A stretch of DNA of 64,000 nucleotides from Octopus sinensis (taxonomy: Eukaryota). A program made the position numbers and the translations under genes. Of this stretch, positions 21,283-51,954 are shown piece after piece (the stretch's first letter is position 1; each line of letters starts with the position of its first letter). Where the stretch lies: assembly GCF_006345805.1 (NCBI RefSeq), contig NC_043014.1:41540001-41604000 (forward strand), in the 5' to 3' direction. Under the pieces are notes generated by a model, which saw only the letters and a list, made by a program, of their open reading frames with translations, did no database searches and was not told where the DNA came from.

Positions 21283-22445
21283 GGCGGCCAGCTGACAGAA
21301 TCGTTAGCAGGCCGGGTGAAATGCTTAGCGGTATTTCGTCTGTCGATATGTTCTGAGCTCAAATTCAGCCGAGGTCGACTTTACCTTTTATCCTTTCAGG
21401 GTCGATAAATTAAGTACCAGTTACGCACTGGGGTCGATGTAATCGACTTAATACCTATGTCTGTCCTTGTTTGTCCCCTCTGTGTTTAGCCCCTTGTGGG
21501 TAATAAAGAAATAGGTATTTCGTCTGTTGTTATGTTCTGAGTTCAAATTCCGCCGAGGTCGACTTTACCTTTTATCCTTTCAGGGTCGATAAATTAAGTA
21601 CCAGTTTCGCACTGGGGTCGATGTAATCGAATTAATACCTATGTCTGTCCTTGTTTGTCCCCTCTGTGTTTAGCCCCTTGTGGGTAATAAAGAAATAGGT
21701 ATATCGTCTGTCGATATGTTCTGAGCTCAAATTCTACCGAGGTCGACTTTACCTTTTATCCTTTCAGGGTCGATAAATTAAGTACCAGTTACGCACTGGG
21801 GTCGATGTAATCGACTTAATACCTATGTCTGTCCTTGTTTGTCCCCTCTGTGTTTAGCCCCTTGTGGGTAATAAAGAAATAGGTATTTCGTCTGTCGTTA
21901 TGTTCTGAGCTCAAATTCCGCCGAGGTCGACTTTACCTTTTATCCTTTGAGGGTCGATAAATTAAGTACCAGTTTCGCACTGGGGGTCGATGTAATCGAC
22001 TTAATCGCTTTGTCTGTCCTTGTTTGTCCATTCTATGTTTAACCCCTTGTGGGTAGTGAAGAAACAGGTATTTTGCCTGTCTTTACGTTCTGAGTTCAAT
22101 TTGCGCCGAGACTGACGCTGCCTGTCTTCCTTTCGGGGTCGATAAATTAAGTACCAGTTTCGCACTGGGGTCGATGTAATCGACTTAATCCCTTTGCCTG
22201 TCCTTGTGTGCCCCCTCTTTGTTTAGCCTCTTGTGGGCAATAAAGAAATAAGAAAATTTAGCAGGCCGGGCGAAATACTTAGCGGTATTTTGCCTGTCTT
22301 TACGTTCTGAGTTCAATTTCTGCCGATGTCGACTTTGTCTTTCTCCCTTTCGAAGTCGATAAATTAAGTACCAGTTGCGTACTAATCGACTGGCCTCCTC
22401 TCCCAAAATTTCGGGCCTTGTGCCTAGAGTAGCGAAGATTATTTC
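21283..22445 (+). repeat. Tandem array of six SINE D (Meta-like) units, 184-bp period
   Basis: One head, then units starting GGTAT(T/A)T at 21330, 21514, 21698, 21882, 22067; sixth unit from 22251 has the alternative tail E. Confidence 0.9.
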
Positions 22446-22879
22446 TATTCTGATTTTAATAACGTTCAAGCATAATTCTAGCACCAAGTTCAAGTTCGGT
22501 GTAATGTATTTTGTGTTATATTTTATGAGGTTTTGATAATTGGAACACCAATTGTATAGTGATATGTTCGGCTCATTCATATATGACGTTTTATGCGTCG
22601 TTACTCTAATGGTAATAGGCGTATTATATATACTAAATGATGTAGTTACTTCTTTGCATTCGTGGCGGTATTGTTTAATTCCTGGTCTTGTATTATGTTG
22701 GATAACCCACTGCTCATATTTGTGTGTTTATGTATATGCGTCTGCCTGTGTATGTTTATGTGTGGGTAAGTGTGTTAGTGTGTGTGTATAGACATATATA
22801 CCTACGTTCACACACACACATACATTATTTCAGTATGTTCTTAGCCGTAACTTTTAGATAATGCAAAGAAATCTAGAAG

Positions 22880-23050
22880 ATATGGATATCTATATCTATC
22901 TATATCTATCTATCTATCTATCTATCTATCTATCTATCTATCTATCTACCTATCTATCTATCTATCTATCTATCTATCTCTAACTATCTACCTATCTATC
23001 TATCTATCTATCTATCTATCTATCTATCTATCTATCTATCTATCTATCTA
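22880..23050. repeat. (TATC)n microsatellite
   Basis: Direct reading. Confidence 0.95.
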
Positions 23051-25743
23051 ATCAGTCTCTCTGCCTGCCAGTCTGTCAGTATGTCTGGCTCTCTGTCTCT
23101 CCCTCTGTATATATATATATACATACATACATACACACACACACACACACATATAGACATACATACAAACATACGTACGTATACATACATATATATATTA
23201 TATATATATTATATATATACACACTATACATACACACATCCATGTATGTCTAGTGCTTATATATATATATATATATATATATACATATACATATATAATA
23301 TATATATATATATATAATATATAATATATTATAATATATATATATATATATATATATAATACATATACATACGCACATCCATGTATGTCTAGTGCTTATA
23401 TATATATATGTTTTCTTTTTTATATTTATATTTCAATACCGTTTGTTGAGTATATTTACATAAGGGGTGAAATTTGTGAGTGACGTGGTATTAGTGATAC
23501 GTAGAATATAATACCTTCATACGGAAAGAGAAAGAAAATGGAATGCATTTCAAATTAATTTTCAATTTTCAACAGTTTTCTTTCAGATTAATTAAACACA
23601 ACCGTTTCACACTACGTAATGAGATATATACTTCAAAAGTCACATTTAAGTGAATTCAGAAAAATTAATTACACAAGAATTTAAGAGAGGCAAAGTAAAA
23701 AAAAAAAAAAAACGACATTTATACAGTAAATCTTTTATGAAAACAAGATGTTTCTCGTATATATACATACATATGTATATTTATATGTATATACATTTAT
23801 AAATATATGTAATCTATACATGTGTAAATGTATGTTATATACGAATATATATATATATTATATTATATACATGTAGGAAATATATTATATATATATATAA
23901 TTATATATATATATATATATACATATATATATGCATATAATATGTATGCATATACATATATATATACATGCAATACATATACATATATATATATACATGC
24001 ATATATAAATACACACCCACACCCACACATACACACATATATATATATATACATACATACACATATAATATACATATATACATACTGTATAAATACCTAC
24101 ATACACACATATATATACATGCATACAAACATATATGCATACACATATACATACATGCACACACACACATATATATATATACATACACGTACACACACAT
24201 ACACACACACATATATATATACATACACGTACACACACATACGCACACACGCAGATATATTACACCATGCGCGCACAAATGAATACGCTTGTATGAGGAA
24301 GTGAATATATCTGATTTCTCAATTGTAATATGTAATCAAAGGAAAAAGAAACTCACACACATATACACCATAAACAACATAAGCAAAACCTACCTATTAG
24401 TTTTGTTGTAACAGCTGTTATGTTTATATATCTATCAAAGAGACATTCACCAATAGCGCTTTGTACTTTCATTCTTACGTCTGAAGGTTCGACAGCCCAT
24501 ATTACGTCAATGTCACTGCTTTATATATTTCAGCGTAAATATTTATGAAATGATGAAGGAGTTTGGTAGCGTGGTTAATGTGTCGATAATAGGTACTCTG
24601 TTAGTATTTGTTTTGACCCTCGGTTCTCAGATCAAATTCTGACGATATCCACCTTGTATTTCATTCTTTTAAAATCGAAGACTTTCCAGTCCACGATGGT
24701 AGTTTGACGGAAATGTAAAAAAGGTACCGAATGCTACCCGTTTCTTGTTCTGGCTCTTATGTTCCGCTTTCAAGGGATTATATGAACATGTTCTGAAGAC
24801 AATTGGGATCAACTCATATTCAGAATAGGAGATAATCCCAAGAATTGTCTAAAACTGACGCGTCATTAAAAAAAGAAGACAATTTAATTGTTTGGAAAAA
24901 AATGTGGACACGTGTTTCTGCATTGACAGATATCATCAGAACTGATACACTCTCACCATATTTGCTCATTTAATTTTTAAAAATCAGTAATTAGAAAAAT
25001 ATCAAGGGTCAGACGTGAGAGTCTTGAAGAAAAATATGGCGAAAATATTTTACAGATTTCATTCTACAAATGTTATATGAACGACACTGTTAATTATTAA
25101 AACTAACGTTCATCCTGTGAAGGAATTATTTCAGTATTTCTCGTACACATGACTAAAATAATACAAAAATAAAAAGTGTGAAATATTGAAATTTTGAATT
25201 GCGGGCGGTTATAAGAGAACTTTGAGATAATGATTTCTTGACAGATTAAGGGTGACAAATTTGAAATCGACGGTTCTGGTCGTATAATACAATTAATTAG
25301 ATTAACTAGGGCCTATATTTGTGACAGTAGCCTGAACCTACAGAGGTTCCTCGATCTCTCACACTCTGCATTAATGGTTACGTGGTAATAGTATTGTAAG
25401 GAAATATCACCGATGGTAATTTTGTAATGTTACCCTGAAAATACACATATATTAATATCATAGAATATAATGTTGCAAGTGTGAAACTTGATGAGGTTTA
25501 CAAGTTACTCTGAATAAACATGACTTTCTTTTAATGAGGAAAGCATAAGTCTAGTTCAAATGCTATCGATTTTTCTTTTATCAGTCTAGGATGTGGACGA
25601 CTGAGTAAAGCGGACACTGCAGAATGCCAATACAAGGATGCAAGACATTGAACTAGTTACTGGAGTATTATGGTATCTCCTCATCATCGAGACATTTTCA
25701 CCAGTTCAGTAATCAAGCCATTTCTTTCAATGTTTATAACATT

Positions 25744-26244
25744 TCTTTTTTTACTTGTTTCTGTCATTTGACTGTGCCCATGCTGGAGCACCGCTTTTAG
25801 TCGAGCAAATCGACGCTAGGACTTATTCTTTGTAAGCCTTGTACTTATTCTGTCGGTCACTTTTTGCCGAACTGCTAAGTTACGGGGACGTAAACAGCAT
25901 CGGTTGTCAAGCGATGTTGGGGAGGGAACAAACATACACTCAAACACACGCGCACACACACACACACACACACCAACACACCACACATATATATATGTAT
26001 ATATGTATATGTATAAATGTAAGTATGTATATATATATGTATGTATGAATATATATATATATATATATATATATATATATATACACACACTTCTTCCAGT
26101 TTCCGTCTACCAAATCCACTCACAAGGCTTTGGTCGGCCCAAGGCTATAGTAGAAGACACTTGCCCAAGGTGCCACGCAGTGGGACTGAACCCGGAACCA
26201 TGTGGTTGGTAAGCAAGCTACTTACCACACAGCCACTCCTACGC
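25744..26244 (-). mobile_element. SINE B
   Basis: Full head, CORE-like block, central (TA)/(CA), tail. Confidence 0.85.
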
Positions 26245-50827: not shown

Positions 50828-50974
50828 CGACTTTGCCTTTCATCCTCTTAGGGTCGAAAAATAAGGTGCATAATTTCGTGCATTATGTCTAAAGAAGAAA
50901 AGAATATCATTATGTATCAGCTGATGATGGAGCCTCTACATGGTTACTCGACTTTACGTAACAATAGCCAGGTT

Positions 50975-51185
50975 AGTTTCACATTTTGGCACAAGGCCAG
51001 CAATTTCGGGGCAAAGTTCTAATAGATTACATCGACCCAAGTGCTCAACTGGTACTAATTTTATCGAACCCAGAAAGTATAAAAGGTGAAGTCGACGTCG
51101 GTGGGTTTCGCACTCAGAACCTAAAGACGGACGAAATCCCGCTAAGCATTTTGTCCGGCGTGTTAACGATTCTATTCAGCCAGCT
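50975..51185 (-). mobile_element. Diverged SINE D head + tail E
   Basis: Meta-like block AGTACCAGTTG, tail GGCCTTGTGCC. Confidence 0.65.
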
Positions 51186-51387
51186 CAACACCCTAGTAAT
51201 GATAATTATTTTGCCACAAATCACACACCACCATCTCCAAAGCATAAAAAAAAGTATTGAAAACAAATGAAATGAAGCAATATATTACGAGATATACAGA
51301 GGAGATGGTCATGGTTGTAAATACTTGACCATAGGTCGGATATTTCATACAGCTAAACAGTGGCATATTACACAACATATAGCTAAT

Positions 51388-51540
51388 GGGAGACCCCCTT
51401 CGGTCATAAATGATCATGGGATTGCACCTAGAAAAATACCCTCCTAAGCACAAGTCCGGGCAAGATTGTTTATGGAAGACCAGCAGTCGCCCATACATAT
51501 CAGCCTCCCCTCTCCACACCACTGATGTTATCCAAAGACT
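51388..51540 (-). mobile_element. SINE tail 5 fragment
   Basis: Homologous to 8784-8915. Confidence 0.75.
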
Positions 51541-51954
51541 GACGAAATACCTATTTCTTTACTACCCACAAGGGGATAAACACAGAGAGGACAAACGGAT
51601 TAAGTCGATTATATCGACCCCAGTGCGTAACTGGTACTTATTTAATCAACACCGAAAGGATGAAAGGCTAAGTCGACCTCGGCGAAATTTGAACTCAGAA
51701 CGTAGCGGCAGACGAAATACCTATTTCTATTTCTTTACTACCCACTAGGGGCTAAACACATAGGAGACAAACAAGGACAGACAGACGGATTAAGTCGATT
51801 ATATCGACCCCAGTGCGTAACTGGTACTTTATTTATCGACCCCGAAAGAATGAAAGGCAAAGTCGACCTCGGCGGAATTTAAACTCATAACGTAACGGCT
51901 GACGAAATACTGCTAAGCATTTCGCCCGGCGTGCTAACGATTCTGCCAGCTCGC
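51541..51954 (-). repeat. SINE D dimer plus 11 nt of a third unit
   Basis: Junctions GAAATA|GGTATTTCGTC at 51721/51722 and 51551/51552; the last partial unit stops after GGTATTTCGTC. Confidence 0.85.

Follow-up and report, generated by a model that had tools for sequence, protein, structure and literature searches.

Background

In vitro, the reverse transcriptase (RT) of R2 jumps end to end several times in succession: on reaching the 5' end of an RNA it resumes at the 3' end of another, and in this way builds head-to-tail concatemers without homology. These jumps take place after run-off at the true end of the RNA, usually with the addition of untemplated bases. Chimeras made by the RTs of long interspersed elements (LINEs), both of the mammalian U6-L1 type and in Magnaporthe grisea, join copies of different RNAs head to tail, all facing the same way; the partner on the 3' side lacks its 5' part, copying of the upstream partner begins at its extreme 3' end, no homology is involved, several switches are possible and one target-site duplication (TSD) surrounds the composite. 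The LINE chimeras of M. grisea (MINE) form at specific switch sites, GCC*A/U (the star indicates the switch), beside predicted hairpins, and their tripartite products have one TSD (PMC2104539). For the short interspersed elements (SINEs) of molluscs, dimeric, trimeric and composite forms and an exchange of modules by template switching have been discussed (PMC4758252). The subject of the present analysis is a SINE, named SINE D, and three arrays that contain it (A1, A2 and A3) in 64,000 nucleotides of Octopus sinensis DNA (contig NC_043014.1, positions 41,540,001 to 41,604,000; this whole stretch is called the window, and its own numbering is used). In all three arrays, the tail of a D unit is joined directly to the same internal nucleotide of the next unit, G48, at the 3' edge of a hairpin loop. 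We favour, with a probability of about 0.5, the view that these arrays are chimeric retro-insertions produced by the RT of the partner LINE as it switched between SINE RNAs.

The arrays resemble the LINE-RT chimeras in their single orientation, in the head-to-tail fusion of different RNAs, in the 5' truncation of the 3' partner and in the copying of the upstream partner from its very 3' end without homology, whereas the TSDs that surround them are candidates only. The switch sites are AGC*G and GGC*A, against GCC*A/U in M. grisea (PMC2104539). Unlike in the known LINE-RT chimeras, donor and acceptor mostly belong to the same SINE family, so that a periodic concatemer of up to 3-5 units results, and about half of all switch points fall on a single nucleotide, which borders a tetraloop on its 3' side. 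Moreover, the arrays enter the acceptor at the LINE-recognised tail, whereas the known chimeras do so at the end of a cellular small RNA. In contrast to the R2 products, the joins are clean, and a free RNA end at G48 is putative. Like the composite SINEs, the arrays are modules fused in tandem, and D, a related family E and a chimera of E with a third SINE share heads and cores and differ in their tails; but the known multimeric SINEs are fixed architectures derived from one master, while here there are three architectures with one junction point. SINE-derived satellites formed by unequal crossing-over are matched by the likeness of the first four units of A1, although that process leaves unexplained both the identical junction at unrelated loci and the arrays of heterogeneous units. 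The arrays are most likely an unusual variant of a known process, the formation of site-specific template-switch chimeras, rather than a new kind of element.

SINE D and its head hairpin

The length of SINE D is about 231 nt. In the window, an AT-rich stretch with many microsatellites and a high density of SINEs, BLAST with the first monomer as query detects some 20 copies that are D or related to it. These copies, together with one external contig described below (L001), are the basis of everything proposed here. The full-length reference monomer (232 nt) lies at 62496-62727 on the + strand and has the TSD AGAAAAAAAC; positions in the element are given as q numbers. The 3' end reads ...GTAAAGAAATA, and its GAAATA is sometimes repeated. 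Clear TSDs of 9-19 bp were found on six solo copies (p <= 0.013 against random flank pairs), which identifies D as a LINE-mobilised retroposon. The E family has head and core in common with D and a distinct tail (...GCCTAGAGTAGAAAAGAATA). Two further SINEs, unrelated and here named X and Z, also take part in the arrays.

The head of D folds into a hairpin of 13 bp (q31-43 with q48-60), four of them G-U pairs, with a tetraloop at q44-47; in the reference monomer, it occupies 62526-62555 and the loop 62539-62542 (+ strand). The sequence-only reading, an earlier examination of this DNA made without database searches, had placed the junction at the boundary between the loop and the 3' arm of a hairpin of 10-11 bp; hairpin and boundary are both real, and the stem is longer than had been thought. 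The sense RNA reaches -16 kcal/mol (z = -4.6), a value equalled or bettered by 0 of 200 shuffles, and the closing pair 43-48 covaries between copies (UG, GC, UA). By comparison, the antisense RNA of this region gives -3.9 kcal/mol (z = +0.7) and the bottom DNA strand -3.7 kcal/mol (z = -0.5). The structure is therefore confined to the sense RNA. A nick made in a DNA cruciform or hairpin was rejected, given this lack of folding in the bottom strand. The stem resumes after the tetraloop with position 48, so the junction falls between C47, the last nucleotide of the loop, and the closing pair.

The same reading had likened this hairpin to a tRNA anticodon arm. ARAGORN reports no tRNA genes for the D head, and Rfam, searched with a consensus-like D copy, gives no tRNA match either at the gathering threshold or at E<=10. 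The analogy is thus positional only. By eye alone, a B-box-like GAGTTCAAATTCC and a weak A-box-like TTAGCACGCCGGG can be discerned in the head. The idea of a substrate for RNase P, RNase Z or the splicing endonuclease was rejected as well, as no matching fold is seen by eye.

One junction point in three arrays

The D tail (...AAGAAATA) is joined directly to position 48 (GGTATTTCG) at all seven of the places that had been reported, with the last A of the tail followed by G48: on the + strand at 21514, 21698, 21882 and 22067, and on the - strand at 38406/38407, 51551/51552 and 51721/51722. Indeed, the BLAST alignments of the monomer to all seven units begin at query position 48. There is no overlap, microhomology or extra base at these joins, the parts share their orientation, and the upstream partners all end at the canonical tail position, as ordinary insertions do. 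A joining by microhomology between GAAAT of the tail and GAAATG of the head was rejected, since it would take place at q41, where no join is seen. A search with GGTATTTCGTC for orphan junction fragments, allowing up to 2 mismatches, gave no further SINE-related sites.

How many events these joins represent depends on the array. Two or three of the four in A1 are later DNA-level copies of one junction, because units u1 to u4 are 93-97% identical to each other over q48-166 and the tails of u1 to u3 are 100% identical; between loci, identity is 75-93%. The sequences flanking the junctions show no private substitutions common to several loci, and the tails and downstream units come from different subfamilies. 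At the three loci, the seven events come down to about 4-5 independent ones, with one or two contributed by A1. Even so, the chance of finding four or more of the roughly nine points of junction or truncation on one of 232 positions is about 1e-5.

Nevertheless, position 48 is not alone. A tail is joined to q15-22 twice (22250/22258 and 38624/38623), and one D unit begins at q50, at 38795, after a SINE X tail and TATA. Judging by these sequences, position 48 is a strong hot spot rather than the sole switch point, the others being q15, q22, q50, q92 and about q121. Since there are also an X-E chimera, a chimeric contig and 5' stutters, all described below, the hot spot at q48 is best seen as lying inside a wider formation of chimeric SINEs.

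Architecture of the arrays

Array A1, on the + strand, begins with a full-length D unit, head included (u1, q1-231, 21283-21513). Three units follow, each covering q48-232 (u2, u3 and u4; 21514-22066, with starts at 21514, 21698 and 21882), then a divergent unit with the same limits (u5, 22067-22250), 83-85% identical to u1-u4. The last part (22251-22441) consists of the 7 nt AGAAAAT and a unit named uE, with a head that starts at q22, the shared core and an E tail (...GCCTAGAGTAGCGAAGATTA). The period of the repeat is a constant 184-185 nt, and every unit has T4 runs. A possible TSD of the whole array is TTTCTA (6 nt; 21273-21278 and 22442-22447).

A1 was enlarged later by DNA-level tandem duplication and gene conversion, as comparison of its units indicates. 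The grounds for this are threefold. Pairwise divergence among u1-u3 is 1.6-4.3%, yet these units stand 6-7% from the family consensus; u4 is a hybrid, u1-like over q48-166 with another, more mutated tail (85%); and the first 36 nt of u5 carry three rare variants that are the same in the following uE. Only for u1-u4 are neighbours each other's closest relatives, which is not the case for u5 and uE, nor for A2 or A3. Elsewhere in the window, a 220-bp segment is present in two tandem copies, 97% identical (63557-64000, + strand, extending beyond the end of the window). It contains the 3' two-thirds of another SINE family and about 65 nt of non-SINE flank, and is therefore a DNA-level duplication and not an RT concatemer, showing that such duplications occur in this genome. 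Nested SINE insertions are common around A1: 83 bp upstream of it, a SINE X copy (20429-21199, + strand) is split by a tRNA-like SINE in the opposite orientation (about 20530-20858).

Array A2, on the - strand, has the order full X, D(q50-232), D(q15-232), E(q48-end). The X element, at 38800-39237, includes an 18-nt 5' stutter at 39220-39237; between its tail (...AAAGAGTA) and the D sequence, which starts at q50, stands TATA. This first D unit (38624-38795) belongs to a subfamily with an 11-nt deletion, and its tail is joined to q15 of the second unit (38407-38623), a member of the long subfamily, whose own tail meets the next G48 at 38407/38406. The last unit (38237-38406) runs from q48 through the end of an E tail (...GTAGAAAAGAATA). 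That the 3'-most unit in two arrays has a different tail, E, had been noted before and is borne out for the 21-kb and 38-kb arrays.

Array A3, also on the - strand, reads D-long(q5-232), D-short(q48-232), a 15-nt fragment (q48-62) and the 3' part of Z. The first unit (51722-51954) is of the long subfamily and has a doubled tail, (GAAATA)2; the second (51552-51721) is of the short subfamily, with a 15-nt deletion; the third (51388-51551) is made of the fragment (51551-51537) and of a 5'-truncated SINE Z (51536-51388). Contrary to what had been claimed, the end of the 3' arm is not where the multimer stops: after 14-15 nt (GGTATTTCGTCAGT(C), 51551-51537), it passes directly into Z. Upstream of the first unit are an 8-nt filler and a candidate TSD, ATTTGCTAT (51963-51971), which has a downstream counterpart, ATTAGCTAT, at 51387-51379, matching at 8 of 9 nt.

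In A2 and A3, neighbouring units are 75-92% identical, which is no more than their identity to copies at other places, and they belong to different indel subfamilies or carry different tails. No T4 run (RNA polymerase III terminator) occurs across their D units. The 5'-most unit is full-length in all three arrays, starting at q1 in A1 and at q5 in A3 and being a whole X in A2. Individual array units have no TSDs when examined with the script that gives clear 9-19-bp TSDs on solo D copies; independent insertions into the tail, each with a TSD of its own, were rejected on this ground. The TSDs of the whole multimers, to which the sequence-only reading had pointed as a check, give a mixed picture: 8/9 nt for A3, 6 nt for A1, and for A2 only a low-complexity (TA)n candidate.

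Other chimeras, stutters and nested insertions

At 50568-50906 (+ strand), SINE X, present from its head to about internal position 437, passes directly into an E element that begins at q92 and keeps the E tail. Its flanks are TSD-like, TCATAATA (50560-50567) and TCATTATG (50907-50914). This chimera could have come from a template switch whose acceptor point was internal, or it could belong to a composite family. In addition, two elements carry a 5' stutter, a second, partial copy of their own 5' end that separates the TSD from the full-length 5' end: D q6-19 plus GCAA at 37668-37685 (+ strand) and X q1-15 plus ATA at 39220-39237 (- strand). As far as their sequences tell, these stutters show a re-copying of RNA 5' ends. 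Fillers of 1-18 nt are frequent at the 5' junctions of D copies.

This SINE was found in one public sequence only, L001, a 543-bp contig from an ENA metagenome (sample ERZ23499442) in which animal host DNA is apparently present. It was reached by a search of protein collections with a 73-aa pseudo-open reading frame spanning the junction; scans of viral, metagenome and GTDB genome contigs for exact patterns of the SINE core gave 0 matches. In L001, the tail of a full D copy is followed by a few bases and then by an E truncated at about q121, and an inverted X-like head adjoins; no 5' part of E lies upstream.

One solo D copy, located at 33498-33725 on the - strand, is inserted in the opposite orientation into a 5'-truncated E-like SINE (region 33477-33832), 20 nt inside this host, between ACT and GGTACTTAATTT, with a TSD of 19-20 bp. 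The TSD of D is GGGCCGATAAATTAAGTACC and that of the host TATATTCTAAAACA; the 7-nt filler at the 5' junction of D, ACTTTTG, resembles the upstream consensus of the host family.

A partner LINE of D, expected to carry the 3' end ...TTGTGGGTAGTAAAGAAATA, was not found in the window, where the two LINE 3' fragments end in (AAT)n and not in the D tail. These fragments are 5'-truncated 3' ends, at 35192-36116 (+ strand) and 59767-60837 (- strand), with a zinc-knuckle region and a conserved C-terminal domain, and they are most similar, in the database, to cnidarian and echinoderm proteins labelled 'reverse transcriptase'. Since a long (AAT)n array comes after each fragment, (AAT)n is apparently the end or the target of this LINE family. 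When the C-terminal open reading frame was used as a query, about 80% identity was met only in contigs shorter than 1 kb, the remaining matches being from other phyla. Open frames at 32073-32384 and 13018-13257 (both + strand) resemble, by eye, the C-terminal part of mariner/Tc1 transposases (...PHPPYSPDIAPSDLHLF...).

Proposed template switching at the hairpin

According to the reading that we favour, target-primed reverse transcription would start on a first SINE RNA, E-tailed for A1 and A2 and Z-tailed for A3. The RT would copy this template as far as G48, the first nucleotide 3' of the tetraloop, and would leave it there, either because the RNA is broken at this point or because the enzyme pauses or dissociates. 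The 3' end of the cDNA would then serve for a new start on a further tail-bound SINE RNA, usually of D and once of X, at its canonical tail. These steps could be repeated as long as no template is copied through to its natural 5' end; once that happens, the whole composite would be joined to the target. Ordinary tandem duplication and gene conversion at the DNA level would have reshaped A1 afterwards. The junctions, the hairpin specific to the sense RNA, the heterogeneity of the units and the lack of TSDs around single units are observed; from them we infer that switching took place, what caused it at position 48, and that each composite originated in a single event.

Concatenation by template jumping of the partner RT, one of the two possibilities first put forward, is the best fit to these data: units are heterogeneous, their tails are full, they have no TSDs of their own, and the hairpin exists only in the sense strand. 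The same junction is found at three loci between non-identical partners, the upstream partners end cleanly at a complete canonical tail, candidate TSDs lie around the whole of A3 (8/9 nt) and A1 (6 nt) rather than around units, and the junction coincides with a structure present only in sense RNA. All of this favours a switch at the RNA level, for which the LINE chimeras of M. grisea, with their specific switch sites beside hairpins and their tripartite forms, are a close precedent (PMC2104539). That the RT is prone to switching is indicated by the 5' stutters, by the X-E chimera (50568-50906) and by the join of a D tail to E at about q121 in L001. In addition, neither the X-D(q50) join nor L001 has a resident head upstream, and same-orientation nesting, in which a resident head is followed by the full-length head of an inserted element, is not seen in the window; the lack of any such non-seamless insertion at q48 again points to template switching.

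What makes the RT leave at G48 can be imagined in two ways. The SINE RNA might be cut endonucleolytically between C47 and G48, perhaps also between C14 and A15, giving a 185-nt RNA that starts with GGUAUUUC and on which the LINE ribonucleoprotein would re-prime serially; we regard this as a doubtful, if specific, proposal. A cut in the loop and a pause or dissociation of the RT at G48 would leave an identical scar in the DNA.

Several observations weigh against template switching. The 5' ends at q48-50 (eight) and at q15-22 (two) all adjoin a SINE tail, and the full-length 5' ends (about 10) all adjoin unique DNA, a split that is predicted by insertion into a resident SINE and not by plain run-off. 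The junctions are clean, though the 5' joins of D to target DNA usually have 1-18 nt of filler. The rare variant CAGGCC is common to the heads of u1 and uE in A1, and A59 to the first and third units of A3; a resident element predicts such sharing between first and last units, whereas switching must invoke gene conversion or chance. No array has D as its 3'-most unit, even though solo elements are most often D, and the D insertion at 33.5 kb has a GGTACTT target. An outer TSD around the composite is expected of a resident target too. Finally, the sample is small, with only about 20 copies from a single 64-kb window.

Weighing the alternatives

The main rival is a process directed at DNA, in which D RNA is inserted into a resident D or E SINE nicked in the bottom strand between positions 47 and 48, and also between 14 and 15 and between 21 and 22. 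The 5' end would be sealed by annealing to the resident copy and the TSD (q48 to about q60) would be hidden, so that the product, a resident head, a new D body with its tail and the resident sequence from q48 to the end, has the appearance of a tandem repeat without seams. The scar is the same as in template switching, since the primer provided by a cDNA that ends at c48 is chemically equivalent to that provided by a nick of the bottom strand after c48. The specificity could come from an endonuclease or from read-through RNAs of arrays, whose 3' end (...GAAAUA-GGUAUUU) would pair with the nicked site; in a related variant, such RNAs may be self-homing, pairing with and inserting at the same resident site. 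This scheme accounts for the clean junctions and for internal 5' ends that always follow a SINE tail, and it predicts variants shared by the first head and the last unit: CAGGCC in A1 lies within 18 nt of the q15-22 site, and in A3 A59 is common and the first difference is at q61, which fits a TSD of 12-13 nt. The 3'-most units are of the older-looking E type, and a bona fide D insertion, at 33498-33725, lies between ACT and GGTACTT with its 19-20-bp TSD. The target preference for GGTAYTT that the sequence-only reading had offered as an alternative thus has one example, which is also the only independent hint of it; the five other TSD-defined D insertions show neither GGTAYTT nor any common motif. 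Furthermore, a preference of about a thousand-fold would be required for about 15 sites in 64 kb, and, as the bottom DNA strand has no hairpin, the coincidence of the nick with the edge of the RNA loop would be accidental. No non-seamless nested insertion at the site is seen in the window, the join of the X tail to D(q50) at 38795 and the D-E join of L001 have no resident 5' part upstream, and A2 would take three nested hits on the hot spot plus a deletion. The rare variants shared by u5 and uE span 36 nt, longer than a TSD, and the heads of the first units are not measurably nearer to E heads than to D heads, a painting of E-like against D-like similarity being uninformative with so few copies. 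On balance, insertion into a resident SINE is unlikely, but it is the alternative that has to be taken most seriously.

The remaining explanations appear weaker still. The junction could be inherited, having arisen once or a few times and been spread by multimeric arrays that were transcribed and retrotransposed or served as acceptor templates; the D part of A3, for instance, could have been copied from one trimeric RNA to which the RT passed from Z in a single switch. The D units of A2 and A3 are without T4 runs, the A3 fragment ends at the arbitrary position q62, as expected of an RT that enters a multimeric RNA internally, and A1 and A3 start with a head-bearing unit. Yet the architectures differ in all three arrays, subfamilies differ, the flanks of the junctions share no private substitutions across loci, and present-day A1 has T4 runs in every unit, all of which makes inheritance improbable. 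A pure tandem duplication or unequal crossing-over of a resident SINE, in the style of the birth of a minisatellite or satellite, would agree with A1, where u1-u4 are closest to each other, with identical tails in u1-u3 and 1.6-4.3% divergence, and with the 220-bp duplication at 63557-64000, which attests the process in this genome. It cannot, however, give the same junction between tail and q48 at three loci with different flanks; the units of A2 and A3 are not mutually closest and differ by subfamily indels and tails, and D units stop exactly at the tail, never including flank. The comparison of units refutes it as a complete explanation, for which the odds are very poor, and it stands only for the amplification of A1. 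Equally remote is the other possibility first put forward, a loop-cleaved RNA of about 184 nt (q48-232), circularised by joining GAAAUA back to GGUAUUUC and turned into multimers by rolling reverse transcription. The constant period of 184-185 nt and the three near-identical units of A1 are what it would produce, but identical units would be expected throughout, whereas those of A2 and A3 are heterogeneous, as are u4 and u5 of A1, which are 83-97% identical to u1-u3 over q48-166 and have different tails; u1 has a head, with no seam between it and a body identical to u2 and u3; and neither the junctions at q15, q22 and q50 nor the foreign partners X, Z and E fit. The likeness of the A1 units is better explained by duplication at the DNA level.

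Significance

If the hot spot is real genome-wide, it would be a marker, at the level of a single nucleotide, of the point at which a LINE RT leaves a structured SINE template in vivo. The junctions also make it testable whether a SINE RNA is cut at a defined hairpin loop. If such loop processing is true, the concatemers are a genomic record of a specific processing of SINE RNA, and the arrays a route from SINE to satellite. Array A1 suggests how the passage from a SINE to a tandem array could proceed: multimers made by RT would come first, followed by amplification at the DNA level. If, instead, insertion into resident copies holds, a SINE would be homing preferentially into its own relatives, a behaviour that bears on target-site selection. 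Under either model, repeat annotation of this genome should avoid counting the units of its periodic 184-bp arrays as independent SINE insertions.

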